Part shown: piece by piece, positions 1,410-62,735 of the stretch | Position numbering within the stretch: position 1 is the stretch's first letter | Layout: each line of letters begins with the position of its first letter | DNA from: Lepidodermella squamata | Lineage: Eukaryota > Animalia > Gastrotricha | Assembly (NCBI GenBank): GCA_047495785.1 | Contig: JBLDXI010000011.1 | Span: forward strand, 682,001 to 746,000 | Length of the DNA: 64,000 bases | Direction: 5' to 3' | Notes under the pieces: generated by a model | Told to the model about the DNA's origin: nothing | Seen by the model: the letters and a program-made list of their open reading frames with translations, nothing else | The model's database searches: none | Position numbers and translations under genes: made by a program

Positions 1410-4400
1410 TTAGCCTCTCGAACATTTCTGGGTAGTTATCGAGCTGTCTGGAAGCGAACTTGCTGGGGCTGGAGAGTAAGTAAGAACAGCTGGCGGTGCA
1501 GGCGATACAACCTGCCTGCAGCATTCGAAAAAATTCGATCCGCCCTAGAAAAATGGAGTAATTGCAGTTAAGTGGCGATGGCAGATGAGCTTCTTATCCG
1601 CACTAAGTGTATTTTTATGGAAATGTCCTTATCGAAATTCCCAGGAATAGTTTGGCAAAAAGCTGGCTTTATCGATAGAGTCGACTTAATTAGAAAGACA
1701 GCTTCGAAAATAACCCTCATAGCCATGATTGGCATAATGAGCGTGAAATCGTCAAGGAATAACTATAAAATGAGCGATGACGAAACGACCTCATCCAGCA
1801 GACAGTGTTCCGATTTTTGCCCACTGGACCACGCTCAGTGACAGACACACAAAAAGGAATCCTTAACATAATGACCGTTGAGTCAAGTATAATTCAAGTA
1901 TAAAAATCAGCGTACACTTTCAAGATCTTGTGGAACCGACCAGGTTTAGGGATTTGAGTTGAAAATTCGCAATTTTTGTTCTTTTAAATCGAATAGCCAA
2001 CAGTTCCGATTTTCATTAGATCAATTTTCAATGATCTGGAATTTGTCCGTAGGGAAGTTAGAAGGAGACCTAAAATTCCTTCCTATTAAGAAAAAAACTA
2101 GCTTCGAGATGCTCACTTTTCTTATTTTCAGAGACGATGCGCGATAAATCGGCCTGCTCGCATTCTGTTTTACTTGGTTATTTTTTGTTATCCTTTTTTA
2201 GCAATATAAAAGACCTTACTCTCTAGAACAGCATCGAAGACTTTAATAGCCTTTTAGTTTTAGGGCATTTTTGCAGTGAGTAATAACTAGTTTCGCGAAC
2301 TGCGAACCAATGGACAGCAGCTTAGCGAAAAAATCGAAAAAATCACAATTTATTCCAAAGTCGCGCACACTTTTTCGCAATTTCTTTCCTGTGGCAGACA
2401 CTTTCTAGTGACAAAAAAGGAGGAATGTCATCAAAAAACAGACTAAAAAGACTGGAGAGCCAATCTCGAACACTCGCCAGTTTATGATGCGGTCGGACGC
2501 CCTTTCCGGTGAATCAATCACACTCAAATATCAATATCAAAGTGCTGTGAGAGACAAGTGCTGATTTTATCACGTATCACGACTTACCGAGTAAGAGAGA
2601 GATGCTGCTACTGCATCGCCGTCTTCGCAGGAGTAAGGCATGTTGATGCAATAAACACCACTCGCTCCGGTGCAAACTTTGAACGGCGAATAATCAGGTC
2701 CACCGATGCATGCCATGACATACTGTGAATTTATTGTGTACAACATATCTGTCCGTTGACTCGCCATAGTACCCAGATTTCCAGTTGAACAGCAAGTAGT
2801 ATAACCGCTGATGCCGCTGATAGTGTAGTTCTTCACGATCTTAAAAAGATTGAAAAGACAGTTCAGAAAACGTCGCAACGAATCTTGGTACATAATAATG
2901 AACACAATTGGAATGTATGGTATACCAGCGATGATGTATGGTACACAACCAAATAGCCAATTGGAAAGGGAGTGCGGCATTTTTACCCGAGACACCTTGG
3001 CCCAACACCTAACGTAACATTTCGACCGAACGATATGTGTTGATCGCGACCTACGACACGCTGCACCAATCGTCATCTTGACCCAACTATTCCAATAATA
3101 ATCTATTTGTGACGGCTATTTGACCCATAGTAAGGTATCAGAATCGAAAATGAAGATTGAAATTTAAATTTTACAGTGATCATGTTACAGAGATCTCTTG
3201 AATTAACTTTTCAATTTCGTTTAGAGTGTATTTTTCTCTAATTTTGAAATTGTTCTCATCAAGAAATCGCATCAATCTTCTATTCAAGATATCTCAGCTA
3301 TTCTGAAGTATTTGAATACACATTTTGGTTCCAAACATCGTTTGGAGTCGAGGTGTCCCGGATTTTAAATAAAATATATTAAAATACAATTATCTAGGGG
3401 TTAATCTTTTTCTCATCTGTTGGATAAGGCACCCAAAACATAAATTAGGCAAATTGAGGTGGAACTTGACGGGAATATTCCAGAACCTTCAGAGCACGGT
3501 ATCTTCGAGGAATAATTACAACTTTAAAGGGAAAGTACCGTAATCCGGTACAACTTTGAACATCAACGTCCACGAAAACTAAAATGTGCTATATGCTATT
3601 ATGTGCTATTATGTGTGTAAATTCAACAGATGCGATTTTGATCGGGTTTTCAACCCCGTTCGACTGGGGCCGTCTTCCGTAATATCCTGATATTTATCAT
3701 TCTTCAAAACTCGTAAGCATAAGGATTTGGCCGAGGGCACCCCAAAAGTTTCAAGTCGACTAAACGAATGTCTTCACCGATGAGGCGTATCTGGACTACG
3801 TTACTAAGGGATTACCAAGGAATACCTGAGGGATCTAAGTAAGAAACATCAAAAGCTGGGAAGAGAGTGACTTCGCACTTGGACCTCGGACTCAGGTCAA
3901 AGATAGAGGCTCACAGATGGATATGGTGTCAGTAATCTTCGATGGCTTGGCCAAACTCGCTCGGGGTTCAAGATCGGGGGAAAATTATATTTCTCCATGG
4001 TTAGCCATAGAATATTCCCTTATTGTGTATGGTTACAGAAGTCCCTGTCTGCGCCGACTGGAATAATTATGCTGCGCCACAATCTGCTAACACCTATGTC
4101 TGGTAATTACAGCTCTACACTTTGCACCTCTTACAGCTAGCGCGACCTAAGAACAGGAGCTATAAGATCAATTTTCCACTTTTGAAGTGATACCTAAATG
4201 GCACGTGTAGGAAATGTATGTTGAATGATATTATATTCTCTGTGCCTATAGCGCAACCCGGCCGACGACCTAGTTCCATCGTTTCCCTATTTGTCCACCA
4301 ATTGTCAATCGTCCTACAGTATATGTATAATGGCAACAGTAATGCTCTAGCGTAAAAGTTACGATTCAAGCCTATTTACACTTCCGCCCAATGCACATGT

Positions 4401-4712
4401 GCCGAGAGTTGTGCAGTAGCGAATCGTCTGCTGGACCGTTGTATCGCCCTTGGTTTTTACGGAGCAGACGCTAAATTGCGATGTCAAACATTTCTGCGTC
4501 GAACCACACGGCCCGCTAGCCGCGCACACGGTGCCTGCTGGGCAGAAGGCGCTCGAAGGTAAGTCGCTAGTTTTCGTACACGTCTGGCCAATCGGGCATG
4601 TAGCTGGCGGGCAAATGAAATAAACTGATGGGCTAGGCGGTGGTGCAACTGACGGACATGCCTCGCCAACTGTGGCAAGAAGCAACACGGTGACTACAAT
4701 GTTTTTTAACAT
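1410..4712 (-). CDS. Gene A: secreted Cys-rich protein, alpha class, 3 exons (4712-4380, 2839-2588, 1544-1410)
   Basis: Exon 1 gives signal peptide MLKNIVVTVLLLATVGEA, then CP... to RYCTTLGTCALGGS|gtaaat. Exon 2 is tttaag|IVKNY..CC..MACIGGPDYSPFKVCTGASGVYCINMPYSC..SYS|gtaagt. Exon 3 is ttctag|GGSNFFECCRQVV...QKCSRG*. All introns are phase 0. Confidence 0.85.
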
Positions 4713-5526: not shown

Positions 5527-5886
5527 AATTCCGCCAAGTCCACATGTTCCTGACGTCGTGCAGTAACGCACTGTTTTCCGATCAGGGGCACTGCCTTTGG
5601 TTGTTACTTCACATAGCGAGAATGTGGCGGGTACTGTTGCAGAGTACGGCGGGCCGCAAGTTTGGGGCGGTGGGCAGTAGGCACACGTCGCACATGCAGC
5701 GCAAGACTGGCCGGGTGGACAAACGGGTGGTGCAGGAGTCGCCGGGCTTTGGCAGGTCGTACCGGAGGGGCACTCTATTGGTGGGCACTGAATGCTTACG
5801 CTGATGCTTGGTGCAGGCGAGGCACTTGGACACGCGAGGGTAACAATGCCAAAGCTAGCCAATGACATTAAAATCTTGAATATCAT
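5527..5886 (-). CDS. A': extra alpha-class first exon with no exons 2-3 of its own (alternative first exon of A, or orphan)
   Basis: Open frame MIFKILMSLASFGIVTLA-CP...RYCTTSGTCGLGGI|gtaaat with a phase-0 donor. No exon 2/3 homologue lies between it and gene A exon 1. Confidence 0.7.
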
Positions 5887-7007
5887 ATTTTCTATACATT
5901 CCAATTAAATCAAAAGATGATTCCGAATTTTGGATTACAAATCTGGACCTGCCACGGGATAAGAAATGTTATAAGTTCGGAGATAAGAGATATTCGCTCT
6001 TTGCAGTGGAAATACAGATAACCACCGAAAAGTATGCAATATCATTTTTCTTAGTTTCAATTTTTCAAATACTTTTTTTTTAATTTTTTAATTCAAAAGG
6101 GGAATATAACAGTTACTATTATTATTTGATAGTAATACTACATGAAGTTTAGATGAAAGTTGAAGTGGAGCAAAAAATGGGACAAACTTATGGGACGTGA
6201 TACAAGTTTGAAACGTTTGGCAAGAGTAATCTTCTTGGGTAGTAAATCTTATGTTGAAGCTGTATTTTCAACTGAAACATGTTGTAAAGCTAGACAACTT
6301 TGGCCAAAAAAAGATGTCGCAACAAATGCAGACAATAGACTGCTCAACTCAACTCAGCTCATGCATTTTCAATGTGTCAAGCCACATGCTGAGTAGTTTT
6401 CTTTATTAGCTCCGTCTTATATCGCTACAGCGATTCATTGTTGAAGATGCTGACAAACAATAGTATGCCCGATGCCCGATTATCAACATGCGGACTAGTG
6501 AAACATATTTGGAACCTGTTTCTTTGGCTGTTTTTAACAAAAAACAGAAGCCAGAAGCTCAAAACCCGGAGTAGATGATCCCCCCTTCCCCTCCACCAAA
6601 AAAAATTCGAATGCCAAATTTTCTGTACTTTTTTATCTACAACAAAAGCGACATTCTATTCAAACGTCCTGTGTTCACCTGGCCTCAAATTAACACATTC
6701 TCGGTATAATTTTGAAGGGGAAATTACGAAAAACTTCGACATTACGTTTCACACAGCATTCAGTTTTCGCTGTATCTAAGCTTTCAATTATAGCTATTCA
6801 TTAATCCTTGAAACCTTCGATAACAGAATTGCATATTTCAATTCAATAGTAGCCATTTTGGGGGTGGGTTAAGGGCGGGTTGAGGGTGGCTAGATACACC
6901 CATGTGCCATTGTAAAGCTTTGATACCAATAAACAAACACATATATACATCAGTGTTGTTTAGCTGCAACCATTCTGTTACGTTTTTCGTTAACCTTAAC
7001 AAATAGA

Positions 7008-8607
7008 ATGATGCGTTATTTATTACTTGGATTGCTGATGTTTCTCAACGGTCGACTGCGGCGTTGGCGCGTTGCGTGCTGCCCTGTTACCACCTACTTC
7101 ACCCCAACATTCGTTTGCCCACCGTCTGATTGCCCGCTTGGCAAGGAGTGCCGCGCAATCTCGGCCTGCGCGTCAGGGCAGTCTTGTTATCGACAAGCTG
7201 ATTGTCCAAATGGTTACCAAGTTTGCGGAGTCGGAAACATGGTGGCTTTCTCTATTTTTTTCTTCTGTATAGCGCAGCTACTTCACTCATGTAGTCCTGG
7301 CCTTTAATGACTCAAGGATAAGATGAGACGCATGCCAAGAAAAGGGCCGATACTTTTTTAATTTCCTCTTATAAGGGCAACGGCTATTTGGCAGCCTGGA
7401 ACAATATCGGCCCTTTTCTTGGCATGCGTCTCAGATAAAGTTGAGATGTGAAAGTTGAACAGATTCTGGGCAAAGTTAGCTAGGTTAGGTTAGCAAGAAA
7501 GGTTAGAATTTCCTAAAAGCATTTTCCCTCATATCTTAGGCACGTCTTGCAACTTCAATCAGCCAACTCTAAATCGTGCGATGAATAACAGTTTTGAAAT
7601 GCCACTTTGGAATCTTTTGAACATGGTGTTAAACTTGCAGCTAGCCTAATTAATAGGGTTTAGGATTTAGGTCACAAAATTCAATTGCGGCGTTATTGCA
7701 GCCCGAACTCGCAACCGTTTGTGAGCATTTCGGACTAATGAAGATTCCCCGTCTCTAAATTTACCGATCCTCATTTAGTATCCAAAAATACTAATAAGGC
7801 ACCATGGCCAAATTAGCCAGAGATGACTAATGACTAACTTTATTGCGAGATTTTTTTATAGTCTCCGATTCCGCCATCGCTATAGCTATTCCTGCGAATT
7901 TTATTTGTTTTGTAGATTTATACGGTATGCCAAGTCGATACAAAAGGTGGCGCAGGAGTCGCACTGACCGGATCGAACGGCCTAAAGTACTGCTCATCAG
8001 GCGGTTATTGTGCCTTGGCAGGAACGGTAAGCGGAGTTGATCTCTGCAAAGGTTATAACAGGATGCATGAGGACATTGATTAAGAAACGTTGAACTGTGT
8101 CCTGACGTATCATAACGAAAAGCCTTGTAATGTTGTACTTATTGTTGGTTGCAGGCTATCCCCAGCCTTGCGTTCAGTTCTCTCGCGGCGTGCTGCACAT
8201 CAATTGGCGCATCGGCCAACGACGTCTTTGACTATACCAATCAATATTACAATAGTTTTAATGGTGGGTACCTAAAAGCCTGCTTCGCTGCTCAGGATGC
8301 GCAGCCATACAAAGCATGCAGATCCGCGCTAGCTGGTAGCACTTACTGCCTGCGATTTCCCCACTCCTGTGAGGAAGCTGACGATATTGACACGGACGGG
8401 GTAAGCGAGAGCTAAATTGCTCACACAGATTCATAATGATTTCCCAATATTATGCAGACTAATTTTGTGACTGGAACGGCGAGATACGGCGCAACGTTCG
8501 CCGAGTGCTGCGAGCAATTGAAGACAAGGCCGCCAAGGATGACAAATACAACAGGCCCGCTTGCCAGCACTGCTGTGAATTTTAAGATAGAAAAATGTAG
8601 CGGATGA
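7008..8607 (+). CDS. Gene B1: secreted Cys-rich protein, beta class, 4 exons (7008-7241, 7916-8026, 8155-8400, 8458-8607)
   Basis: Exon 2 is IYTVCQVDTKGGAGVALTGSNGLKYCSSGGYCALAGT; exon 3 is AIPSLAF..CC..YLKACFAAQD..IDTDG; exon 4 is TNFVTG..FAECCEQLKTRP..EKCSG*. Collinear with B2. The exon-1 donor (gtggct) is weak and was placed by homology with B2 (gtaact). Confidence 0.85.
7324..7433. mobile_element. Small (~110 bp) MITE in B1 intron 1
   Basis: Terminal inverted repeat TGAGACGCATGCCAAGAAAAGGGCCGATA; absent from the paralogous B2 intron (~37970). Confidence 0.7.
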
Positions 8608-8732
8608 AATTTCCTTATTCGAAAACAGCATTGCGCTGTATTCGCTGATAAGCTCTGAGGTGCATTGCAACTTAAATGAATAAATCCTTTGGTTCTGAAA
8701 GGTTGATTTTCTGGATGTCCGGCTTAAAGAAT
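8580..8732 (+). repeat. 153-bp direct repeat, left copy, flanking the Helitron
   Basis: Identical by eye to 13259-13411 (TTTTAAGATAGAAAAATGTAGC...GGCTTAAAGAAT). Contains the last codons, stop codon and AATAAA of gene B1. Confidence 0.95.
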
Positions 8733-11700
8733 GTCAACACTGTCAAGATTGTGATGCTCGACTATTCGTTCAAGAAAAAGTGGCCGGGACGAATACAAAC
8801 CCGATTTTTTCCATGTGTTGTGGAAGAGGAAAGTTCGACCTACCCGAAATTCAACAACCAGATTTCGATCTCATGCGTCTTCTCACATCTACTCATGAAT
8901 CTGCTGTTACATTCCGACAGTTTATTCGAGCCTACAACAATAATTTCGCATTCACTTCAATAGGCATGCTACTTGATCACAGTGTTGCTAACGGACGAAG
9001 CGGGCATTTCAATTTTCGCGTCCACGGCGAGATGCGACATTTATATGGTGCTTTGGAACCTGAAGACGGCATACCCAAATTTGCTCAGCTCTACATTTAT
9101 GATCCCGACAATGAGATCAACAACCGCCTCACCCACATGCCGGACCTCAATCCAGTCATTGTATCTACCCTGAGGGAAATGATGCATCAATCCAACCCTT
9201 TCGTTCACATTTACAAATACGCCGCCGAATTGTTAAAGAGCACGGAAAACATCGCCGTGATGCTGAAAACTGATCGAAACGTCGATCGTCGTCGTTATAA
9301 TTTACCTAACGCGAAAGAACTGGCAGTAATTCTCCCAGGTGCTGATTGGGACCCAGAGGCGAAATGTCGTGATATTGTTCTTCGCCTCCGTGGTGGTCCT
9401 TTGAGTCGTATCAACGAGCGAAATGCTAATTACGATCCTCTCCGCTATCCTCTTATGTTTCCGCGAGGAGACCTGGGTTACACCGACGAAATACCGATCA
9501 ACGCAGGCTACCGTGGCAGCCATATTACAGCAATGGAGTTCTACGCTTATCGCCTAATGATGAGGGAAGGCAGCTATCTGCAACTATACGGCCGGCTTTT
9601 CCAGGAGTATATCGTCGATGCCTGGGTCAAAATTGAAACCCAGCGGTTGAACTTTCTTAAATATAATCAAAATGTTTTGCGGGCGGATCTATACCAAGGC
9701 TTCGCCGATGCTGTCGCTGAAGGTGACCGCGATCTCAATCGTGTTGGTCAACTCACCGTTTTACCCTCTTCTTTCATTGGATCGCCGCGTTTTATGCAGC
9801 AAACGTACCAAGACGCCATGGCTTTGGTCCGCAGTTTCGGTCATCCGGGGTTTTTCGTCACTATGACCTGTAACCCCGCATGGCCCGAAATAGAAGCTGA
9901 ACTTCATCGCGAAAACGGGGTCCTAACCCAGACTGCCTCAGATCGCCCTGATTTATGCGCCCGTGTCTTCCGCCTTAAGTTTCGAGAACTGATGGACGAC
10001 TTGACTAAGCGACAAATCCTAGGACGAGTTGCTGCTCACATTCACGTCATTGAGTTCCAGGTAAATTTAGTTCGATCCGCGTTAAGGCTAATAATAATCT
10101 ATTTTCTGTTTTATAGAAACGAGGTCTTCCTCACGCCCACATTCTGTTAATTATGGCTCCTGAAGACAACCCTCTTACACCGGAAGAAGTTGACAAGGCT
10201 ATCTGGGCGGAAATTCCTGATCCGATTACTCATCCACGGCTTCATTCTATCGTCACTAAATCAATGATGCATGGCCCATGTGACTCTCGATGCATGGAGA
10301 ACGGCAAATGTACAAAAGACTTCCCCAAACCTTTCGTCGAAAATACAAACTGCACCCGAGACGGCTATCCTAATTATCAGCGACGGAATGATGGTCGTAC
10401 CTTCAAAACTCGAAGTGGCATCGAACTAGATAACCGCTGGGTTGTACCCTATAACCCGTATCTGTCTCTGAAGTACGGCTGTCATATCAACGTGGAAGTT
10501 TGCAGTGGTATTCGCGCGGTCAAATACCTCTACAAATACGTATACAAAGGTCATGATCGGATATTGATGTACCTGCGAGATCCAACCTTGCCAATCGATG
10601 AAATAGCAAATTATCGTGATGCTCGATACGTTTCAACGTCTGAGGCCAGTTGGCGGCTGTTCGGTTTCTCTCTGCATAAAGAATTTCCGGCCATTTGTCG
10701 TCTCGACCTCCATCTGCCTAACCAGCAACGAGTCGTATTTGACCCGAATAATGGTACACCTGATCTCGCCACGCTGGGCCGTACTAAACTGACTGCTTTC
10801 TTCGAAATCTGTCAGAATGATCAATTAGCTCGAACTCTAACTTACCCCGAAATCTGCCGCGACTTCACCTGGCACCCGAAGGGAAGGAAATGGGGACCTC
10901 GACTAAAGGGACGCGGATGTGTTGGTCGTGTTTACACCTGCTCCCCTAATCACGAAAATTATTTTTTGCGACTTCTTTTACACGTCGTCAAAGGCCCCAC
11001 TTCGTTCGAATCATTGAGAACTGTTGCGGGAACTGTTCATCCAACTTTCATCGCCGCGTGCCGTGCTCGAGGCCTGGTAGAAAATGATGATGAAGTAGAA
11101 CATAGCCTTTTAGAGGCAGTGCAATTCCAGATGCCGGTTCAACTTCGGAAGCTGTTTGCCATGCATCTCATCTACTCGAATCCGCCTAATCCGCATCTGC
11201 TGTGGCAACAATTTGAAACCCAATTTTGCGAAGATTTCATGCACAGCGAGGGCCTAACTCATGTCACCGACCGCATGCGAAACCGTGCGCTTGCTCAGAT
11301 CGAAATCAGTCTTAACTATCATAGCAAGTCGTTGTCCGATTTCCCTCAAATGCCCCTTGCTGCTGCCGAGGAACAAATGTTTGAGTTAATTCGAGAGGAA
11401 ACCGACTACGACCGAGAGCAATTGAAGGCTTTTGTCCTGGAAAAGACGCCCTTACTGAATGAAGATCAAAAGACGGCGAAAGAAGAAATCGAGAACGCTG
11501 TTTTCAACAACGAGCCGGGTGTTTTCATGCTACAAGATCATGGAGGCTGTGGCAAAACCTATTTATTCAATCTGCTACTTGCCTCCGTTCGATCTCGAGG
11601 GGAAATCGCATTAGCCTGTGCCTCATCAGGTATCGCTGCTCTGCTGTTAACTGGAGGTCGAACGGCTCATTTCCGGTTCAAAATCCCAATCAACATCCAC

Positions 11701-12843
11701 GAGGGATCAACTTGCTCAATATCAGCTCAATCGGCATTGGCTGAATTGATTCGACGTGCGAAATTACTTATCTGGGACGAAGGCCCGATGATGAGCCGAT
11801 ACACGTTTGAAGCCGTCAATCGAACGTTGAAGGATATCCGTCAAAATCAATCCTTATTCGGAGGTCTCACAGTTGTCATCGGCGGAGATTTCCGCCAGTG
11901 CCTACCTGTTGTTCCCAAGGGCGGCCGCCATCGCATCGTGGAACAGTCCCTCTCTCGGTCTAATTTCTGGCCTCAAGTCCGAAAGCTCACTCTCTCGAAG
12001 AACATGCGAGTTATTGACGATCCTGCTGTAGCGGGCTTTCCCGAATGGCTACTGCGAGTCGGTGATGGATTAGCCGAAGGGCCGGCCGAATTAGGTCAAG
12101 ATTTAGTGACCCTTCCAGAGCCTATTAACAACGTCGAAAACTTGAACGACCTGATTTCTGCTATTTACGGTGACTTGCCTACCCGTTATCACGAGACGAA
12201 ATACTTAGCCGAACGCTGTCTATTAGCAACTCGAAACGACGAGGTCGATTTGTTGAACGAGCGCATCTTGAAGGATCTGCCTCAGAAGGAGTTGGTTTAC
12301 TTGAGCGCCGATTCGGTTGATAATCCTAATCTACGGCAATTCTATCCCACCGAGCTGCTCAATACCTTCACGCCACCCAGCCTTCCGCCGCACAAGTTGG
12401 TTCTGAAAGTCGGTGCTCCCATCATTCTCTTGAGAAATCTTGACCCGGCATCAGGTTTATGCAATGGAACTAGACTATCTGTTCAGCGATTACGACATAA
12501 CGTTATCGAAGGCAAGATTCTTACTGGGAGCTTTGCTGGAACAATTGCTCAGATTCCACGCATTCCTCTCATTGCTGATCAAGATGGTACACCTGTTGTC
12601 ATTCGTCGAAGGCAGTTTCCCGTCCGATTAGCCTTCAGCTGCTCAATCAACAAAAGCCAGGGTCAGACCTTCCATTTTGTTGGCCTGTCTCTCAAGCAGC
12701 GCGAGGCGTTTTCACACGGTCAGCTTTATGTCGCCCTTTCGCGTGTGACCGACCCCCGAAATTTATATTGCTATGTACGACATTGGGAAGAGAGAAATAT
12801 ATTTTATACCAAAAACATCGTTTACCGTGAGGTGTTTCTGTGA
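8733..12843 (+). CDS. Helitron Rep/PIF1-helicase (RepHel), N-terminally truncated, one intron at 10061-10116
   Basis: Zn-finger-like CQDCDA..MCCGRGK; Rep motif 1 FVTMTCNPAW; HUH motif EFQ|KRGLPHAH rebuilt across a GT-AG intron; motif 3 KYLYKYVYKG; helicase motifs HGGCGKT, IWDE, GDFRQ, CNGTR, SINKSQGQT, HGQLYVALSRV. Confidence 0.95.
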
Positions 12844-13258
12844 TCTTTCCTCGATATTTTAAATGAAATGTGCTTATAGAAAAATGTGATCTCCGTGTTA
12901 TCTTCTTGCAATAAAATGCATATTTTGCTACGAACACTTTCAGAAATCTAGCTTAATTCGTCATCCATTATTATGTTTACTATTTCGTAGAGGGAAATTA
13001 GGCTGTTTTATTTTGTGTTTGACTCCTTCTTTTAAATTTCTCTTGGCAACAAGTGATGATGGCAAATTGTGTTAGATTACTGTGAGTGTTACCAGATCTG
13101 ATTTTAAATGGTCGCTATTTTCTTATAATGTATATTGCTATTTACATTTCATATTTCCGGCGATGTTTAATGCTTTTATAATAAATGAATTTAATTTGTC
13201 AAACTCGACTTTTTATTAGCGACTATATAGTAATAGATACGAGGCCCGTCTTTTCTAG
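8733..13258 (+). mobile_element. Helitron, 5'-truncated
   Basis: RepHel ORF; 3' end ...GAGGCCCGTCTTTTCTAG followed by T (canonical CTRR end; host A|T target at 8579/8580). No 5' TC end: the element starts inside the ORF. Confidence 0.92.
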
Positions 13259-13411
13259 TTTTAAGATAGAAAAATGTAGCGGATGAAATTTCCTTATTCG
13301 AAAACAGCATTGCGCTGTATTCGCTGATAAGCTCTGAGGTGCATTGCAACTTAAATGAATAAATCCTTTGGTTCTGAAAGGTTGATTTTCTGGATGTCCG
13401 GCTTAAAGAAT
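13259..13411 (+). repeat. 153-bp direct repeat, right copy
   Basis: Begins immediately after the Helitron CTAG; matches 8580-8732. Confidence 0.95.
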
Positions 13412-14784: not shown

Positions 14785-15257
14785 TATTTCAGTGATGGCT
14801 AAAAGTACGGAAGGGTAATATTTGACAAAACAGTACTAATTCATGATGGTAAGATGAATAAAGACCGATAATTTTGATTGATTTTGAATTCTCAAGTGAT
14901 TTTCTGCCTTTTCTCAATGAAATGCTACCAAGGATGGCATTGTTGATGAATAAAATGGAAATAGGAATTTCACGAGAATTGCTGTTGGTGTCAAAACGTT
15001 TGCGCTTCTTTCTAGTTGCGGCAATAACAAAAAAGCCAACGAAAACAATGACACGCTGTTTTCTCTCAACGCTATGCTGTGTTATATTTAGTTGATTCAT
15101 AAAAATCATGCGTAGCCTCAAGGCCACTGGCTTTTTCGTCGCAGGTCTCGTAATTTGGCGATATTACGTTCTAGGATGCCCTCCGGTCAGTGACGTTTCA
15201 CCCATGCTGTCGTGCCCGCCGTCCAAGTGCGAATCTGGCCAGACGTGCATCGCTAAT

Positions 15258-15518: not shown

Positions 15519-15519
15519 T

Positions 15520-15535
15520 TGGCGCCGAGACTCCG
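15520..15535 (+). promoter_or_regulatory. Primer-binding site (tRNA not identified)
   Basis: TGGCGCCGAG.. one base after the LTR; TGG pairs with tRNA CCA. Confidence 0.75.
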
Positions 15536-22179: not shown

Positions 22180-22183
22180 CATA

Positions 22184-40346: not shown

Positions 40347-40353
40347 TTGATAG

Positions 40354-47900: not shown

Positions 47901-50665
47901 GTATTCACGCGGGGCTATTCTTGGGTTCTAAATATCACTTTTAGAACTCTCAGGTTTCAGTTTTCTCGTTCATGAGAAGCTGAAACCAGATTTTTCTAGA
48001 AAATAAACTCCAAATGTGTAGACCCGGTGGGTATATTTGGGCTGAACAGGCGGTTTTAACGGGGGGTTTGAAACAGTTCGGTTTTAAAATTTAAAACTTG
48101 GTTTTAAAGAAAGCCATCCATCGCCGGATTAACAGCTATTTTAGCCGTTTGTCCCAACTTCTGTGTTTCATAACAATTGAATGTACCAAAAGAACAATCG
48201 ACAAAAATTCGTGGAAAATCCTAAAACCAAATGCTAATTTGATTTGGTCTACATGAAACCAGGTCTATACCCAGTTTCGTCTTAACATCGACAAAACCGC
48301 TTCGAGAATACCACCCATTAAGTTTGAATAAGTTTCAGAGGCTCAGCATTCAGATCTGAATTCAGCTTTTTCAGTTTTTACTCGCGACAGTTTTTGCAGC
48401 ACAAAAATCTCACACTCCGCCTGTATAAGTCCGGGCCGATAGGGCAAATTCGGCTGGTTTGATTGAATTTCAGTAGCGTAGTCATTTTTAATTTCCAACT
48501 CGAAAACGTTTTAACAGCGGTCAATGACACCAGGGCCGGATCATGACACCAAAAATTGACCCCGGGCCCTTAGGCAAATCCTCTTTCCGGGCCCCATCTA
48601 CCCCACTCAACGTCCTTACATTCTTCATCCTTGGTCTTACAAAAATGTCAATATAACATAAGCCAGGTCTTTTTTAAGGTTTCCTTTGGTGTTTAGACTA
48701 TAAAAACTTGCGAATAGGCGGAACTTGTGAACTTTCCGGCGGCTAACATAAAATGCCCCGTATCTTGACAGAAAAATTCGCGACGTTTAGCTTTCTAATG
48801 AGTCAAACCTTTGAAACCTAAATGAACTGCTTTCTCCGCGAGCGAAGCGAGCTTTAGCTAATTGTATTTTTTCATAATGTTGGCTGAAAATAGTCTATAA
48901 TTGATTCGAAATTGCATGTGGATGACTTCGTGTTGTGCTCTCGCGGCCCGCATTTTTGGAAACTTCCCTCCCTTTGAACTTTAACACCCCATACTCCATA
49001 TTCCTAAACGGACCTCGCCCGATATGCTATACTCCTAGAAATAGTCAGTCGCGAGCGAAGCGAGCTTTAGCTGACGATTATTACCACATGTGTCTTATTT
49101 TCAGATAGCCTGATTTATGCATCGCAGCCAAAGACCGTCAAGGGCATGTTTCTTCAAATAAAATCATACGTAATAAAGCAAGCTGTCGAATGCGAATAAA
49201 ACATAAGGGGGGAGCCTTTGGTTTTTGTTAGGAGTACGCTTTTTTCATGGGCCCTTTGATGGTAAGTGCCCCCCCCCCCTGTGGTTTTTACTTGAGGTGC
49301 CAAAATTCAATGGGCCCCAAGGCAACTGCCTTACTTGCCTACTGGGTGATCCGGCCCTGAATGACACTATGGCGGACACGTTGGTATTTTTTCGTTAGAT
49401 CAAAAAATGATCAAAAACAAAAACCTAAGTTGAACAAAATCGAAATTTCAATATCAGGTTGACTATTTTCAAATTGCTAGTATGTCCTGACCATGCAACA
49501 TAACGGTTTCCCGGTCTCAAAACCTAGCTAACATCAAAAAGCAATATTCCTCAAAAGGGCGATCAAGAATTCAAGAAACTCAATTCTCTGCAAATTATCA
49601 AAGTCGAAATCGTCCTTCCCGCCGTGAAAGGGTTAATGTTCAAGTTTACTTATCAAGCTTGCATCATAGCGGAAAGTCAATGTAAAATCAGCCGTTTGTA
49701 ACTATGATTTATAATTTTGCAGCAGAGTTATCCGGTTTGCCAAGTCGATACAACGGGCGGCGAGGGTGTTGCGCTGACCGGAACAAATGGACTAAAATAC
49801 TGCTCAGCCAGACCCTGTGCACTTGGAGGATCAGTGAGTTTGACCTGTAAATTTCGAATTTCGCGGTTAGCTTTCCCTATGAGAAATAATCTTCTTAGTT
49901 TTGCACTCACGTGCTCCCACTTTTTCTCCTGATATCGCGAGCTGCCGTTTTTCCATCTTGAATATATTCGGCATCATAGAAGCTTCCCATCTGTCGCATT
50001 TGGATAAAAATATGAATATTTGTTTCCTCGCAGATAATCGCGAGCCCGGCAGCGTTTTCTTCTTTCTCAGCGTGTTGCAGCTCGATTGGTGCATCCTCAA
50101 CACTTGTCTACGACTACTTAACCTCCTATTTACTTCCGGTTACTATCAATGGATACAATGAATTTTACGTAAAATTTTGCTATGCCGCGCAAGACCCACA
50201 GCCGTTTAAAGCATGCAAGTCGTCTTCATCCAACGAGGTCTACTGCTTGAGAATTCCGCATTCGTGCAAGAACTCTGATGTAGTCGATACTGACGGGGTG
50301 AGTTCATTCCAATTCCCTAATTTATTGTAGAAACTGGAGGAAATCTTAAATAATTACATTTAATGTCCGTGTAACTGAATTTTTCCTAAAAGACATACCA
50401 ATTGAGGTTTGCATTTCATTACAGTAAATTAGCACCAACTAAATCCTAAAGCATACCGGTGGTACTGTAATATTTAGAATTATCATATGTGATTAGTCAC
50501 GTTTTCTTTCAGGCACATTTTGAAGCAGGAATCGCAAGCAATGCCGAGTCTTTTACGAAATGTTGTGCCCAGCTTAGGACGAGGCCCGTTGTGCCAGTTA
50601 GTTCAACAACATTGGAATACCGCAGAAAAGACGACAATTGTGTTGCAAGATTTTTGATTGGCTAG
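44983..50665 (+). CDS. Gene F2: beta class (44983-45219, 49726-49833, 50034-50297, 50513-50665)
   Basis: Paralogue of F1; same GC donor (ACG|gcaaga); CAGCAG tandem acceptor at exon 2; exons open. Confidence 0.85.
46239..48316. mobile_element. TIR element with GGG termini and an apparent 3-bp TSD (PIF/Harbinger-like)
   Basis: ATT|GGGTGGTATTCTCGAAGC ... GCTTCGAGAATACCACCC|ATT. Confidence 0.65.
48531..49359. mobile_element. hAT-type non-autonomous element
   Basis: 8-bp TSD AATGACAC; TIR CAGGGCCGGATCA; two internal GCGAGCGAAGCGAGC motifs. Confidence 0.9.
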
Positions 50666-50799: not shown

Positions 50800-53700
50800 T
50801 TAAATCGCCGAGCATTTTGCTGCAGCGATTTTACTATCCGGAAGGGAATCCACAGGAGCTCTCGAGAAGGTAATGGCAGTATTGTGAGCCGTTTTCAGTC
50901 GTACGCAGCATTCCATGAACGTTGAGCCATGTTTTACGGAATTATCAACAAAGTCATCCTGGAAGCAAAGGGAATATCTTTAAATCGGCGTCATAAATTT
51001 ATATACCGTAACGAGTGGTATCTTCGGACAAAACATGTTTTTCGAACATTAAAAATCAGCCTTCGCTTATAATTACTGAAATTCTCACCAAAGATGGGAG
51101 CGGTGATTGTTGAACTTACTGCGAATTTTCAGAATTTTCAGAATTTTACCTGACCTTTGGCAAATTAAAATGTGTTCCGGTAACTTTGGACAATTCGAGG
51201 ATAATTTTGGACGCTCATTTGCAAATGCAATTTCATTGCAATTTCATTGTGAATGATCAGTTTTTCATGGTCACTTTAGGGTCAGATTACGAAAGAAATT
51301 ATGGACAGAGGCGCATCATTTGTTTTTCAGAAGTTCAATAAAAATACGTTTCTGAGCAATTTTTTTCTGGTCTGGTGTAAACTATCGTAAAATCCTGGTT
51401 GAAATGGAATAAAAAACGAGAAATTGGTAACGAAAATGCTTCTTGTGATTTTTGGTAAAAACGTTCATGTTTGGTATTTACGGTAGAATTTGCCGCTGAA
51501 CCAATTTTTTCTGGTCTGGTGTAAACTATCGTAAAATCCTGGTTGAAATGGAATAAAAAACGAGAAATTGGTAACGAAAATGCTTCTTGTGATTTTTGGT
51601 AAAAACGTTCATGTTTGGTATTTACGGTAGAATTTGCCGCTGAACCAGGGTTGGGGTTTATACAGATATTTCAAATTTCGGATCTGTTTAAACGTTTAAA
51701 CGTTTAAACACATGTTTAAACAGGTATATATACAGATAATGTAAAAATGGGTATTTTGCTCCAAGCTACATCTCGTCAACCGTATCTCTAGTTCAATGCG
51801 ACGATGGTGACATCGAATCACCCGCATCAGGTAGCGATTATCGATTATCGATTATTGATTATTGGTAACTGATCGAGTGATCGATTTTTCAAAATTTAGC
51901 TCAATCGATTTTATGTGATACAGTGTGGTCTTTCTAAAGTATTTCAGCTGTGCGGTATTGATCCTGGGGACATAATGACTCTTAGACGATTTCTGGCTTG
52001 CTGTTATCTATGAAAATGTGAGCTTTTTTGCGCGGCAACACCCCAAAAACCGCTTTTTGAAAAAACCGGTTTATACCGGTTGGGGTTCAAACCGAATACC
52101 CTGGCTGGAGTTCAAAAGTGTTTCACAAACCGCACTTGCTGACGAAGAGTCGCCATCGTCGCACGAGTATGGCATCTCGATGCAGTAAGCCCCGCTAGGT
52201 CCGCTGCAAACTTTGAACGGCATGTCGTCAACTCCACCGAAGCACGCCACGGCCAGCTGCGAGTCGACGCTGTACATGACGCTCGATAGTTTGCCCCTTA
52301 TTAGCGTGCCCATGTTTTGAGGCTGGCAGCAAGTGTAAAGCCAATCGTCCGTATAGTAGCTGTGAACAGGTCTCACCACGCTCTGTTGAAAGATGCAAAT
52401 TCAGCTATCAGCTAAGTATCATTCGTTTGATTTTACTTTACTGCCTTTTCGCGTTGCGCGTGTACACAGTATGATGTTATAACATATATGTACATGGAAG
52501 TAGGAATATTTATAGGCGCCTCACCGTCGACACACAGTGTTTAGACATGTCATTCGACAAATGTTGTATAATTTAATTTTTTAATATAGCGGTAGAGCGA
52601 GTATTAATTATATTTTCAGGTATTTCATTCCAGATTTTGTATATCCTATTTCCGATAGAGAATTTTCGTACATCGGTATGGCATTTAGACGCATTGTGTT
52701 TGAGGTTGTAAGTTGAAAAAAATCTGCACGCTGATTGGTCAGTTGGCTCGTATCCATGACTCCGCCTTGCTACTTGATCGTGCGATGTTTGCATAAAATA
52801 TCTTTTTATGAATGGTTTTACGCATTTGTTGGAAACGCGTGCTACGATACGGCCTTCATAAAAATAATAAAAGCCACAAATTATATAGATCGCACGATCA
52901 AGTAGCAAGGCGGAGTCATGGATACGAGCCAACTGACCAATCAGCGTGCGGATTTTTTTCAACTTACAACCTCAAACACAATGCGGAATTCGATAATTAG
53001 ACTTTCTGGGAATACGAAGTACGATCGAATGAGCGATCAAAGTGTTTTACGTCGCTAGTCGCTAACGATATTCATGATTTCCTTATACGGTTTCAGGAGT
53101 TTTGCTGAGCTTGATCACTTCAAACTTTCCGAATTTGGTGGGGGCTTGAAATATGAAATAAACTGGATCCAGTACTGTGTAAGTGGATCTTAAATACCTA
53201 ACTCCTCTTTTCCCCTCCATTTCTTCGCTAATATGTTAATACTCTATGATATCGATTTTCTTGACCTCAGTTCTCGATCAAGCATTGGAATGGTATTTTT
53301 GAGAGATCGAAACCGCTCAATATCTATTTACCAGCTAGACAGGTCACATGAGTCATCCTGTCTGTACGGAGATGACGAATTTCAATATTAGAAGCTTCCA
53401 GCAGTTCACTAACAGTTAAAGATCCAGGCAGATGATTGAGGATCTAAGCCCAAGAGGAGCAAAATATCAAAAGGAGTAAACTCGAGTGAGGGAAAGAGCG
53501 GATTTTTTACTGCTAGAATTATTTGCTCGCGCAATAATACTCTGAGTGAGCTAAAAATTGCTTCAAAAAAGCTTGAATGAATGCAAAAAGTAGCAAAGCG
53601 ATTTTTAGAAGAGTATTAATACTAAAGTATGCGTCATATTTTTTTGCATCGCATTTTTTGAATTACTTCTCAACCATTTTTTGAATTTTTTGAAGCGGTT

Positions 53701-54787
53701 TCCACCAGTCAGTAGATAATAGATCTAGTCTGCGGTAAAATTTCCTCAAATTTCATTGGTGACAAAAATGCTGCCCACGATTTTTATTGAATATACCAAT
53801 TTTTCAAAAATTTCATGTACAGGATTTGAGACTGTGTGGCATCGCGAAATGCTTTTTCGGAATTTGTTGAATGATCTGTTAAAACATTACGAAGCCTTCA
53901 GTTTTGGATAGTCGAACAATATTTTCAGGAATCGGTATGACGTAGATCCATTACGGACCATCCTCTCAAAAAAACTTGAAGCCTCTGGCAAGAGAGACAA
54001 TCAATTCAGACCAAATAAGATGCAAAAATAGCATTATTCAAAATTGAGCATTTTCAATAAAAATCGCGGGCAGCATTTTCGTCGCCAATTTTTTCTCTCG
54101 CATACAATTCTAATGAAATGTGAGGAAATTTTACCGCAGACTAGATCTATCGACTGGTGGTAACCGCTCCAAAAAATTCCTCATGGTTATGAAGTAATTC
54201 AAAAAATGCGATGCAAAAATTTTTTTACGCATACTTCAATTTCGCGAATAACATCCTGCATCTAAGGGTATTCCTGAATTGGAGAAAAATTGGAATAGAC
54301 CGCTTATCAGCCCCACGGAAAAGGTACTTTTTTAATCATTACAGGCATTACTGACATTGAAGAAACAAGAACAATATTTCATCTGATGATGGAAGGTTGA
54401 TTTAAAAGCGATAATCGACGAAACTTGGCGAATGATCTTGACTAGAATTAATAAATCAGATCTTACCTTTCCGCCCAGCAAGCACGTTCCGATATCTGTA
54501 CAGTAGCGAATAGTCTGCTGCGACGACGGAGCGCCCCGCGTTGTTATCTCGCAAAGGCTGGAAGGCTGGCAAGTGTAAGGAGAAGAACATGATAAGCTAG
54601 CAGAGCACGATGTTGACGGTGGACAAGAAGGTCCAGTTGACGCACTGGGGCTTGCACATTTCTGGCCGAATGAGCATGAACCCGGCGGGCAGACAATGCC
54701 AACCGACGCGGCGACTGGTGATGAAGCTGTTGGGCAAGTCCGAACAACACTTGCCAGCCAAGACAGAATCAAAATTCCTCTTAACAT
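50800..54787 (-). CDS. Gene G2: alpha class (54787-54467, 52382-52131, 50958-50800)
   Basis: Paralogue of G1; exons open; the exon-2 donor gtttgt was placed by homology. Confidence 0.86.
51357..51645 (+). repeat. Two near-identical tandem copies of a ~145-bp unit
   Basis: CAATTTTTTTCTGGTCTGGTG...TTTGCCGCTGAAC occurs twice, differing only in T-run length. Confidence 0.9.
52573..52689 (-). mobile_element. 3' remnant of a CR1/L2-like LINE ORF2
   Basis: VRKFSIGNRIYKIWNEIPENII resembles the R..F..R....WN.LP C-terminal motif of these LINEs. Confidence 0.55.
52690..52985. repeat. Near-perfect inverted repeat (97-bp arms, ~100-bp spacer)
   Basis: 52690-52786 is the reverse complement of 52889-52985, with one mismatch seen. 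Confidence 0.9.
53625..54236. mobile_element. Foldback element in G2 intron 1
   Basis: AAGTATGCGT..TTTTTGCATCGCATTTTTTGAATTACTTC and its reverse complement at the two ends. Confidence 0.75.
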
Positions 54788-58071: not shown

Positions 58072-60109
58072 TTAGTTTCGGATGCACTTGTCGACGGTGA
58101 ACGCTGGTGTGCCAATCGTAGTCGTTGCGTGCAGTGTTCCTTGGGTTGACGCTTGAGACAAACCAGAGCAGCACTTGGCGTAGCTGTTGTAGGCGAATGT
58201 CGCAGTTGGCAGAGTATCAGACTACGTTTCAAAAATGGTTTCAAAATAAATTAGGAAATGGGTAATACGTGAAATTCGAACGATCAATGAATTTTGGATC
58301 CCTCTTCTTTCTCTTCTTCTAGTATTTCTCTAGTATGGAAAATTAGGCGAAAATAAGAAAAATTAAATAAGGATTCTACCTTGCGAAAGTTCAAAGATAT
58401 TATATACTAAAATTATTCAATGAATTGATATAAAAATGAATTTTGCTTGTAAAATAAGGCAAATTTGAGGTCCAAAGAGAAAGTGCAGCCAACTCTGATC
58501 TTTTAATTAAACAATGATTATTCTGGAGGACTGAATTCTTTTCTGTGGGTTAAATTGGAGGTAACCAAGTATCAACTGAGGGCCAGCATAAAATACTAGT
58601 GCATTTTATATCAACTTACCCCGAGGGTGTCGATGCCAACACCCGCCGACTCGCACGAGGACGGGAATCGGAGGCAGTACGGCTGAGCGCTGTTCGCCGA
58701 CGCGCAGACCTTGTACGGGAGGAGGTCATTAATGATAGCGAAACACGCACTGACAGTTGTAGTACTCGTGCCCGAAGCGACCGTGTAAGAGTCCCATGAA
58801 ACGGCGCTGATGGCGTTGCAGCACGCGTCGTAGGTGGTCGCGGTTTGGGAGACGATTGTGCCGCCGAAACTGCACGTCTTAGCCGTGGTGCAGTAACGCA
58901 AGTTGCTGGTCGCGATGCCGAGACCACCGGTGGTTGTCAAAGAGCAAACGGCATAGTTCTAAAAGTAGATAAAAATTAAGAATAATATTAGGAAAGCATG
59001 AAAAATTGATGCCAGAGCGGAGTAATGTTTACACTCAATGGATTGAATCCAAGCTAAGCTTCGAGCTTCCTTTATATATCATTATATGTCATTATATGTC
59101 ATTAATTGCAATTACGCTTCAATCAATCTTTTTCAAAGGATTATTCATCTAAAAATGTAAAAACCTTGGCTAGACGCTCGAGCTTGAAGCTCGCTTTGTC
59201 GTTAAACTCACTTCATTCAAGATTAGGAATCAGCTGAAGTTTTCCACAATCGAATACCCAATAACATTCAAATTTCCGATGAAAAGTGTTCTTTCCAGCT
59301 ATTTAGTGAATTTTCGGCTCGAATTTGATATACAACTTTCAAAGACACGAATCGGTTGATTTAAGCTGATTCGTGCCGTGAACGATTTGGTCTAATCTAT
59401 TGCAGGAATTTTAGATTTCAGTTACGGCTACGTTAAGACTGCCCAACTATATTTGAACTAATGAATTATTCTTAACGAGAGGTTGAGAGGATTTGGCATC
59501 AAATTCGAGCCCGATTCATGCGAAAAATGCAAAATCTTTACAAGATGATTGGATAAGGGATGATGGAAAATAATCGTGTAGATTTCTAATCCGATTTTTA
59601 TAACTTCTAAGTTCAATCAGGGTGCGATCTTGGACCCTGGAGCTGCCATGGATGGGAAAATTCCTGCTGTATTTGTCAAAATAACAAGAGATTTCAACCA
59701 AAAAACTAGCGAGGCGAGGAAATAGGGAAGAGAAACGCTCCAAAACCTCTGCAAATTGACGAAACAGTTAGGTACATTTTCATTTTCTTGTCTAGTATGG
59801 TTGAACTAGTCGCACAGTGAGATCAAGTTCTATCAGACCCTTAGACGCTTTACAAATTTAGCTGGAAGTTAATTCTCGGTAATAAACAAACGGTAAGACC
59901 GGAAATCATTGAAGATATGAGAATTTAAGAATTTAAGGCTGGCTTACGTCTGAGCACGAAAGCGATGTTGTAGAGCAGACGTTAGGAGTCATGCAAGATT
60001 GGCCCGACTGGCACACGCCGGTCGCACAGTTGGTGGCGGGCGAAGTCGAAGGCGGGCAGGCGATGGCTGCGCCCAGAAGCGCGCCGAGTGCAATCAAAGT
60101 CGGCAGCAT
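58072..60109 (-). CDS. Gene H: divergent family member, beta-like (60109-59948, 58958-58620, 58221-58072)
   Basis: MLPTLIALGALLGAAIA-CPPS..; exon 2 NYAVCSLTTTGGLGIATSNLRYC..CC..YCLRFPSSC..IDTLG; exon 3 ..YAKCC..VDKCIRN*. Confidence 0.88.
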
Positions 60110-60522
60110 ATTGTCGTCTGTAGATTGGCCTTTCTTACAATCGCTTCCAAGTGAGAAGATGGCAAAAAAACAACAGCAACGACGGCTCCGAGTTGAACGA
60201 GCACTTGATGAAGAGGCGACTAATTGCTTTCAATTTTTACGCGCCGACCGGCCTTGTGTTTATCAACGCCGGCTACAAGAATTAATATAAACCCGTCTTA
60301 AAACTTAATATACCCACGATGAGTATAGTTGAAGACTCATTAACTTGCCGCGCTTTTGTTGGTTGGCAGTGGCGGCCGGCGATGAAAAAAAGAACCGGCG
60401 ACCATCCATCCATCGCCCGCCTGCGTAAAGCGGCAAAAACAAAGTAGCAGTAGTAGTAGCGGGCGACCATCTTCTCATCGCATAATATAGCCGTATAATA
60501 AAGTGACGAAAAACACTCGATC

Positions 60523-62735
60523 ATGCTCGATCTGTTGCAGCTATTGGCACTTGCCGGCCTTGTTGGAATCGCAGTCGCGTGTCCCGCGTCTTCGACCGCT
60601 CCTGGGACGAACTGCGCGACCGGCATCTGCTCGAGCGGAACCGCCTGCTACGCTCCGAATACTTGCTCGTCGGCCACTCAGAGCTGCATGAGCCCTGCAC
60701 CGGTAAGCAATTGAACGTATTCAGAGCTACTCCTTGAAAGTCTGAAAAATTAAATTTAGTCACGAGACACAAGTCTTGATAGAGCTTCACACCTTTAAAC
60801 TCGAAACCCTTAAATACTTCGGCTTAAATACTTAGGCTTTCACATGCGCTTTTTGAGTAAGAGATTTAGGTAGGGTTGTTACAACTCCGAGTTTGCCTAT
60901 AAAACCCCTCGTTTTTGCCACCGAAAGCTCATGTGAGCTCATTGGTCTCACTTTTGCACTGCCTGTGGCTTTTTCAAAGGCATAATTCCTGGCTTTCCAA
61001 GATTTTACCACGCCTTTGAGGGGACACGTGTGACACTGTTCGAACACTGATTTTCACTAAGATTTGCCCCATCCGAATGACTGCGATTTTCTCATCTCTA
61101 TCTCTAATTACAGGTCCACAGGTGATGCGAGTCCGATCATATTCGATTTTTTAGGTGATGGTTTTAGGTTATATTATCTAGTTTCAAGTATTGACATCAA
61201 GGAATGCTGAAATTAAATGAAGAAAGATCTTCATCGTGAGGTTCGGTCGTATGTTTCTGCTTCTGCTCTTTTCACTCGAATGCCTGTGAGCTTCAGGGAG
61301 TCGCTTCTTGGATCAAATTTGTAGAATTAATTTAATGGATAGCCCTTATTCCACACTCCAAGGATCTAAAATTTAAGACCTACTGTAATTGATGGTCGAG
61401 ATTGCCCCATCCGTGCAGTTGGATTCAGCCAATTTGTTGTAGCATCCTAATTGCTGCGTTAGATGCTTTCAGCATTGGATTTTCAGATTCTAAACTGCTC
61501 CCATGACAGACGCTAACAGTCCTCCTCACTGATACCACCGAAATAATCATTGTTCAAAAATCAGTATTGGCATAAGCATTTAAAGCCCAAAAATCACGCA
61601 GCCGTTCTTTTTAAGTCTGAGCTCTGAGCATGGGGCGCGATTTCGATCGTTTTGAGTACATTTCAAAGGCGTCGTTATTAGTTATTGAAAATTCGACCAA
61701 TTTGTTGCGAACTGTCTATGGAACTAGTATTTTTTTCTGATCCAAGCTCCAAAGTAGACAAAAACCAATTCAGGTCTCAGGTCTAAATTGAAAATATTGC
61801 TATTATAGCCTCAGGGGGATTCGTTTTCATGTTCCTTCATACTGACCATGCAAATTGAAGGATTTTCCCCGATTTCGAAACTTTCGAAGTTTTAGTGAAT
61901 TGTTTTGGTTTGTCTTGCTACGTCAACGTCAGATCTCAAACAATCAGACTGATTTGCAATTTTTGATTTTCCCAAATTCTTATGTTGCATCTGACTTTTA
62001 GACTGTTTACCTCGGCTGTCAAATCTCCACCGTTGGTTCAACGATAAGCACTGTTAGGTACTGCTCCCGCTCGGGTTCATGCCCGCTCGGCGGCATCCAA
62101 ATCAACACGCCAGCACCCGTTTCCGCAGCCACGTTCGACGACTGCTGCACAGCCATCGCTTACGCAGGCATACCAGTCACCTATGAATCTTACACGGTCA
62201 GTGGCTCGATTGTCAACTCGTGCATCGCTACCAGCTCTGCCACGCCGTACCGAGTTTGCGCCTCGGTTAACACGTCGCCAGCTTACTGCCTCCGCTTTCC
62301 GCTCAGCTGCGAAACTTACGCTGTAGGCCAGTCGACTACTCTGGTAAGATAATTTTGCCGCTCTAAGTACTGTTTCCTCTAGAAAACTGAAATTAAGTCT
62401 AGCATTCAGTTGACATTCCTAATATTAGGTAAATAGTAATTACTGGGAACCTAATTTCATATTTGAGAAGGGCTCAGCCAGGAATAATAATTAGCTTCTT
62501 GATCTGGCTTAGTTTCACATTCGCAGAAATTCATGAGTTGGTCATCGCTAACTAGAAGATGAAATTTAAATTTGTTAACTAGGCTGATGTCACAATAACT
62601 CCGTCAGTCTTGCAATTCGCAAGCTACGCCAAGTGCTGTGCAGCCCTCACCGAGACCGCTGGCATCACGCATACGTCATCGGCTACGACGGCAACTGCTC
62701 AGGGCTTCTCTGTTGACAAGTGCAGCCGTGGTTAA
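60523..62735 (+). CDS. Gene I: divergent family member, alpha-like (60523-60702, 62002-62343, 62583-62735)
   Basis: MLDLLQLLALAGLVGIAVA-CP..; exon 2 TVYLGCQISTVGSTISTVRYCSRSGSCPLGG..FDDCC..YCLRFPLSC; exon 3 ..YAKCC..VDKCSRG*. Exons 2-3 are missing from the ORF track. Confidence 0.88.

Follow-up and report, generated by a model that had tools for sequence, protein, structure and literature searches.

An array of head-to-head gene pairs encoding a cysteine-rich secreted protein family in the gastrotrich Lepidodermella squamata

Gene content and organization of the array

The window analyzed here is a 64,000-nucleotide stretch of the genome of the gastrotrich Lepidodermella squamata (GenBank assembly GCA_047495785.1, contig JBLDXI010000011.1, positions 682,001 to 746,000; GC content, 41.7%). 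Based on six-frame motif scans and tblastn searches with seed exons, the region from position 1410 to 62735 is the array of a single gene family throughout, with two classes of predicted secreted, cysteine (Cys)-rich proteins, alpha and beta, and a third class comprising genes H and I. Exon modeling identified 12 intact genes with open frames, three broken genes (D1, C2, and D2), and one lone exon (A'). Their order is A(-), A' exon(-), B1(+), C1(-), D1(+), E1(-), F1(+), G1(-), B2(+), C2(-), D2(+), E2(-), F2(+), G2(-), an unrelated ankyrin gene(-), H(-), and I(+).

The alpha genes (A, C, E, and G lineages) are all on the - strand and have three coding exons and 20 Cys, and the beta genes (B, D, and F lineages) are all on the + strand and have four coding exons and 20 Cys past the predicted signal peptide; H and I have three coding exons and 18 Cys each. 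An earlier note on this DNA had assigned three exons to alpha and four to beta, which the models bear out for coding exons. Its description of a secreted 20-Cys family fits alpha and beta, which also have predicted signal peptides, but not H and I with their 18 Cys. The alpha motif that it proposed, FKVCSGPSGAYC, is exact in C1, E1, G1, E2, and G2 and occurs as variants in A and C2, and its beta motif, GGxGVALTGxNGLKYC, is present in all five beta genes that retain exon 2. The strict alternation of the two classes extends from B1 to G2, although three of the genes (D1, C2, and D2) are broken and A' consists of a first exon alone. The divergent ATG-to-ATG gaps are indeed short (1121, 323, 653, 396, and 413 bp, with 2117 bp for G1/B2), and the only intact native pairs are E1/F1, E2/F2, and H/I.

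Gene A, alpha: exons 4712-4380, 2839-2588, and 1544-1410, - strand; 239 aa, 20 Cys
A', lone alpha-type first exon: 5527-5886, - strand; signal peptide, 13 Cys, open frame, GT donor
A'/B1 divergent gap: 5887-7007; 1121 bp
Gene B1, beta: exons 7008-7241, 7916-8026, 8155-8400, and 8458-8607, + strand; 246 aa
Gene C1, alpha: 13642-14784, exons 14784-14446, 14180-13944, and 13800-13642, - strand; 244 aa
C1/D1 divergent gap: 14785-15107; 323 bp
Gene D1, beta, broken: 15108-24642, + strand; exon 1 split by a Gypsy element at 15258-22444; exons 23615-23722, 23831-24103, and 24496-24642 open
Gene E1, alpha: 24735-25723, exons 25723-25394, 25229-24996, and 24887-24735, - strand; 238 aa
E1/F1 divergent gap: 25724-26376; 653 bp
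Gene F1, beta: exons 26377-26622 (GC donor), 27676-27783, 28126-28392, and 30102-30263, + strand; 260 aa
Gene G1, alpha: 31256-35516, exons 35516-35181, 33055-32807, and 31414-31256, - strand; 247 aa
Relic of the ankyrin gene 3' end: 36582-36784, - strand; marks the duplication junction, which lies between 36784 and 37577
Gene B2, beta: exons 37634-37873, 38293-38403, 38476-38721, and 38775-38924, + strand; 248 aa
C2, alpha, broken: 39099-40345, - strand; 5' end deleted, other exons open
D2, beta, broken: 40354-41497, + strand; exons 1 and 2 lost, exons 3 and 4 open
Gene E2, alpha: 41598-44586, exons 44586-44263, 42120-41887, and 41756-41598, - strand; 238 aa
E2/F2 divergent gap: 44587-44982; 396 bp
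Gene F2, beta: exons 44983-45219 (GC donor), 49726-49833, 50034-50297, and 50513-50665, + strand; 253 aa
Gene G2, alpha: 50800-54787, exons 54787-54467, 52382-52131, and 50958-50800, - strand; 243 aa, without a beta partner
Gene H, third class: 58072-60109, exons 60109-59948, 58958-58620, and 58221-58072, - strand; 216 aa, 18 Cys
H/I divergent gap: 60110-60522; 413 bp
Gene I, third class, sister of H: exons 60523-60702, 62002-62343, and 62583-62735, + strand; 224 aa, 18 Cys

Introns in the array are phase 0 and GT-AG, except for a GC donor in F1 and F2, both of which keep a GC-AG first intron (window positions 26623 and 45220, + strand). Exon 3 of gene A starts about eight codons later than in the other alphas. 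A' is 44% identical to exon 1 of A and has two extra Cys; A' and exon 1 of A may serve a single alpha locus, opposite B1, as alternative first exons.

Protein architecture and search for relatives

The proteins share a common plan, namely, a signal peptide, an N-terminal module of 6 to 8 Cys with short CPxGxxC-type repeats, and a 12-Cys core. B and F have a 21st Cys, which maps to position -1 of the signal peptide when cleavage is placed by alignment with other members. Consecutive Cys of the core are separated by 12-20, 4-5, 16-22, 0, 24-37, 11-12, 7-9, 6, 20-28, 0, and 24-31 residues. The two halves of the core look alike, each with the pattern C..YC..C..CC..C; an internal twofold repeat was not significant, as 7 of 100 Cys-fixed shuffles scored equally, and we regard the likeness as a resemblance only. 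No membrane segment beyond the signal peptide was predicted in the family proteins, and their net charge is near neutral.

All homology searches and structure models were run exon by exon; spliced models served for alignment and trees only, with broken genes carrying an X at the break or compared piecewise. Pfam gave no match for 10 pieces or for 15 core exons (to E = 10). Word-seeded searches, which were length limited, recovered no relative of I exon 2, of the E1 exon 2-intron-exon 3 read-through open reading frame (ORF), or of the alpha exon 1 alignment. A full HMMER profile search against 1.84 billion protein representatives also found no relative, its sole match being a 5692-aa protein in which no stretch was matched and no domain was informative, which we took as noise. 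No relatives were found in metagenome contigs, PDB sequences, or the ESM Atlas, and such proteins were not found described for gastrotrichs in the literature.

The model of H exon 2 (one of five models; predicted local distance difference test score [pLDDT], 65; predicted template modeling [TM] score, 0.55) consists of a hairpin, a strand, a short helix with the CC pair, and a hairpin. Fold searches with two single-exon models (pLDDT 58 and 65) gave a best Z of 3.4, Foldseek E values of >2, and Atlas TM scores of up to 0.41. As these single-exon models are weak, the lack of a fold match does not prove a new fold, and the modeling leaves a new disulfide fold as a possibility. The absence of matches across the sequence and exon-model fold searches agrees with the earlier note, which had called the family unrecognized.

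Several known folds were compared directly. A helix that carries the CC pair and precedes a C-F hairpin is reminiscent of MANSC; a MANSC/PAN-apple relationship was supported by neither profile nor fold searches (no Pfam match to E = 10; no PAN or MANSC entry among the fold matches of the single-exon models with pLDDT 58 and 65, best Z 3.4). The short CPxGxxC repeats resemble TIL/EB modules and had no Pfam match. The core spacings lack the C-x3-C and C-x-C knot motifs of cystine-knot hormones (glycoprotein hormone and bursicon). Nor do they contain the CC-x4-CN of Ly6/uPAR three-finger proteins, as 24 to 37 residues follow both CC pairs before the next Cys, and Pfam gave no such match.

Duplication history and decay of the array

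Self-comparison of the window revealed a tandem duplication of the block B-C-D-E-F-G. The block copies are 66 to 85% identical at the protein level, with a synonymous divergence (dS) of 0.30 to 0.59; hence, the duplication is old, and an assembly artefact was ruled out. Three head-to-head pairs, A'/B, C/D, and E/F, are older still. Protein identity between lineages is 37 to 50% in alpha and 41 to 51% in beta, and alpha versus beta identity is 24 to 35%; in the tree, alpha forms a clade (support, 100/99). The alternation thus represents three old alpha/beta pairs and one block duplication rather than independent events.

As the earlier note had cautioned, G has no native beta partner, and G1 faces B2 (2117 bp) through the duplication alone: an ankyrin gene lies upstream of G2, and the relic of its 3' end upstream of G1 (36582-36784) indicates that G natively follows the ankyrin gene. 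The ankyrin-repeat gene (Pfam Ank; 55250 to about 57200, - strand) has the same orientation as G2 and ends about 460 bp upstream of it; the two are possibly operon-like neighbors.

The array copies are now decaying. A Gypsy element with identical 261-bp long terminal repeats (LTRs) and a 5-bp target duplication has inserted into D1 exon 1, and in C2/D2 one deletion took the gap and both 5' ends. As the assembly was made from amplified DNA (PMC11660948), individual junctions, the C2/D2 deletion among them, require support from reads. Contigs of one DNA run, which may derive from the source sample, cover the E1/F1 region.

The Gypsy-type LTR element (15258-22444, + strand) is very recent and carries gag and pol frames and an additional ORF (21496-22086) with a CCHC knuckle. 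For D1 exons 2 and 3 (23691-24128), the DNA-run contigs contain a second version, several percent diverged and at equal depth, whose changes are mostly synonymous together with a 9-bp in-frame deletion; it is likely the other haplotype.

Class and origin of the H/I pair

H and I are 42% identical to each other, 28 to 35% identical to beta, and 25 to 28% identical to full-length alpha. The earlier note had taken H as beta-like and I as alpha-like, i.e., as an inverted alpha/beta pair. That view did not survive the trees: a topology joining H with beta and I with alpha was rejected (approximately unbiased test, p-AU 0.018, with the caveat of long branches), and H and I form a clade (support, 100/97-98) of sisters with 18 Cys and three exons each. 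They also share the same intron plan: both have the beta-type intron that follows the N-terminal module, and both lack the one that follows the LGG motif. As H and I are sisters, the head-to-head layout probably has two separate origins in the family (alpha/beta and H/I), unless conversion homogenized an old pair. Such recurrence can be read to mean either that pairing was repeatedly selected or that the genome is prone to form inverted duplicates.

Selection and class-specific conservation

The ratio of nonsynonymous to synonymous substitution rates (dN/dS) is 0.24 to 0.49 in all six duplicate pairs and H/I, indicating purifying selection. By region, the ratio is 0.19 in the second half of the core, 0.56 in the N-terminal module, and 0.61 (confidence interval, 0.42-0.92) in the loop after the first CC, and no region reaches 1. 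Allelic differences in the D1 and E1 exons, from contigs of one DNA run, comprise 11 synonymous and 5 nonsynonymous changes.

The two classes differ in which part of the protein is held fixed. Between independent lineages, hairpin 1 is 82 to 83% identical in beta versus 38%, with variable length, in alpha, whereas hairpin 2 is 74 to 79% identical in alpha versus 30% in beta. In the beta motif, synonymous codon differences between lineages amount to 33 to 59%, compared with 50 to 56% over the whole gene; as synonymous change is near the gene-wide rate, the motif is held by selection rather than by recent conversion. On these comparisons, the surfaces under constraint differ between alpha and beta. 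Partner subunits would be expected to show such a difference, but so would two proteins with different targets. The reciprocal hairpin conservation offers new, indirect support for different and complementary roles of the two classes.

Intergenic regions

Conservation between the E1/F1 and E2/F2 gaps is limited to the beta-proximal ~120 bp. One Sox-like word, WCAATG, precedes all betas, but it was chosen post hoc and was not counted. An AG acceptor-like site directly precedes the ATG of five alpha genes (4713, 25724, 44587, 35517, and 54788; - strand), and acceptor scores before the ATG are high only for A, E1, E2, and F2. For E2 and C1, the gap contains no canonical donor on that strand, a finding compatible with spliced-leader trans-splicing, and G1 and G2 have in common a conserved upstream block with a GTGAGT donor. 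At the convergent D/E 3' ends (24643-24734 and 41498-41597), opposite-strand AATAAA signals lie 1 to 2 bases apart in both copies, and the D and E transcript ends should therefore overlap.

Is the head-to-head pair the functional unit?

The best reading of the array, which we put forward tentatively, is that alpha and beta are co-regulated partner subunits of one secreted protein. Judged by sequence, the family consists of lineage-restricted, soluble, secreted, disulfide-rich proteins of about 220 residues, with a small N-terminal Cys module and a 12-Cys core. We hypothesize that an old inverted duplication gave rise to an alpha gene and a beta gene; these have diverged to the point that each class keeps a different hairpin nearly fixed. 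The two-gene unit was copied into three old pairs, and a six-gene block was later duplicated, with copies now decaying; H/I, as sister genes, represents a separate inverted pair of probably independent origin. Each pair would most likely be co-activated from a common short upstream region, and both classes would be kept because alpha and beta are non-covalent subunits of an environment-facing protein made under limited conditions. The class-specific hairpins may then be where the subunits touch, and the N-terminal module and the loop, which change faster, may face outward.

In line with this proposal, all three old pairs retain both partners, with gaps of 0.3 to 1.1 kb. A close parallel is with the mouse Abpa-Abpbg modules, in which a divergent layout encodes obligate dimers (PMC4274081). 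These secretoglobin genes are likewise divergently paired alpha and beta paralogues with secreted products, and their region also underwent block duplications at a later stage and contains pseudogenes as well as a small number of genes without a partner. A heterodimer is plausible for the array proteins. In the Abpa-Abpbg region, the pair is the unit of expansion; here, the three old pairs fit such a history, but the recent block copied tail-to-tail units, and the comparison of alpha and beta trees rejects no topology. ABP is moreover a small, all-helical, disulfide-bridged dimer that has been demonstrated biochemically, whereas the chains of the array are about 220 aa long, mostly beta in structure, with 10 predicted intrachain disulfides and no free Cys. 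Neither the four-helix fold nor the sequence of secretoglobins was found in the array proteins, as there was no Pfam match and the model is mostly strands with one short helix.

Several observations weigh against partner subunits. The mature chains have an even Cys count with no spare Cys, so that no ABP-like interchain disulfide is implied. G has no partner but remains intact and under constraint (dN/dS, 0.49), and the gene opposite C1, D1, is disrupted. Concordance of the alpha and beta trees, assessed over three lineages, led to the rejection of no topology. In the alpha motif, synonymous divergence between E and G is 12 to 24% versus 45% gene-wide, and some conversion is therefore possible. 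Stop-to-stop gaps are only 92 (E1 to D1), 100, 134, and 174 bp at four of the six tail-to-tail junctions, indicating that short spacing is general in the array, and the recent block consists of three tail-to-tail pairs, with the head-to-head pairs cut by the duplication. No motif or alignable sequence common to the gaps of different pairs was found. Finally, the E1/F1 stretch was found in no RNA run, which hints at low or stage-limited expression.

Some of these observations would be explained if alpha and beta were co-regulated paralogues that act separately, sharing a promoter and being secreted together, e.g., into an egg coat, cuticle, or secretion, without forming a fixed dimer. We consider this possible, although on balance unlikely. 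The silkmoth chorion A/B genes provide a precedent: they are head-to-head paralogue pairs with secreted Cys-rich products in tandem arrays with pseudogenes, the HcA/HcB spacing of 330 nt resembles the 323 to 653 bp of four pairs here, and the word heterodimer is absent from the paper on that locus (PMC4639761). The lack of a spare Cys and the persistence of unpaired G and C1 fit separate action, the class-specific hairpins could each bind a third component, and absence from RNA contigs fits stage-limited expression. However, the array proteins look globular and nonrepetitive (strands and a helix in the model), with three or four coding exons, whereas chorion genes have two exons and encode repetitive structural sequence. 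Homology to chorion was not detected, with no family match in the searches and no two-exon structure. Promoters of different pairs in the array are also dissimilar, in contrast to the highly conserved (>80%) promoters of middle and late chorion pairs.

It is more doubtful that the layout is a mere by-product of inverted and block duplications in a very compact genome, with functionally uncoupled neighbors and with alpha and beta as subfamilies that have different jobs. Tail-to-tail gaps as short as the head-to-head gaps, a recent block that respects tail-to-tail rather than head-to-head units, and the recurrence of pairing in H/I would all follow from such a process, and inverse adjacent order is frequent in new duplicates (PMC4274081). 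Yet both partners of three old pairs (beta identity, 41 to 51%) were kept across gaps of 0.3 to 1.1 kb despite heavy transposon traffic within introns and at other sites, and a by-product would not predict the reciprocal hairpin conservation.

Least likely, in our view, is combinatorial recognition, in which any alpha could join any beta to give a repertoire of immune, self/non-self, or pheromonal specificities: although class-wide invariant hairpins would permit cross-pairing, the N-terminal module and loop are variable (dN/dS, ~0.6), the family shows birth-and-death dynamics, and the divergent tgrB/tgrC genes of Dictyostelium, which share one promoter (PMC12745789), set a precedent for recognition, dN/dS stays below 1 in every region, most allelic differences in the DNA run are synonymous (11 of 16), the window holds only three beta lineages with four intact beta and six to seven alpha chains, and the proteins have no membrane anchor or signaling part. 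The recognition role and the combinatorial diversity proposed in the earlier note thus find no direct support. The tgrB/tgrC pairs resemble the array in their short shared region, repeated duplication, and partner decay, but Tgr proteins are large, span the membrane, vary strongly between alleles, and have a proven role in allorecognition (PMC12745789), whereas the array proteins are predicted to be soluble, with no membrane segment beyond the signal peptide, and are under purifying selection. The fullest form of the idea, a gastrotrich-specific secreted recognition repertoire with an undescribed disulfide fold, free alpha-beta pairing via the invariant hairpins, and a back-to-back layout that evolved twice, is similarly improbable.

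Other features of the window

A Helitron Rep/helicase sequence at 8733-13258 (+ strand) has long open frames of 483 and 908 codons, terminates on its 3' side in CTAG, and is apparently 5' truncated. Its flanks (8580-8732 and 13259-13411) form a perfect 153-bp direct duplication that takes in the end of B1. Helitrons do not normally have such a flanking duplication, and it may reflect either a repair event or an assembly artefact. Palindromic foldback inserts resembling miniature inverted-repeat transposable elements are present in introns and gaps (26741-27158, 31484-31894, 35915-36087, and 52690-52985), and a perfect tandem repeat of 2 x 144 bp lies at 51361-51647. Beyond the array, a 251-codon ORF (63246-63998, + strand) with a Cys/Asp-rich end runs off the window; it had no Pfam match, and by eye we took it to resemble the C-terminal part of an AIG1/GIMAP-type GTPase.

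Implications

The gene family is a genuine orphan, its genomic layout is of a type already described in other systems, and it is a candidate for a new disulfide fold from a barely studied phylum. If alpha and beta do not bind, the array would be another lineage-specific secreted family of the kind that is common in poorly sampled animals. If they do bind, the array would be a small natural model of the path from a duplicated secreted protein to one with two subunits, in which H/I, as the younger pair, and alpha/beta, as the older ones, would represent two stages side by side, and the reciprocal hairpins would allow a direct test by mutation.

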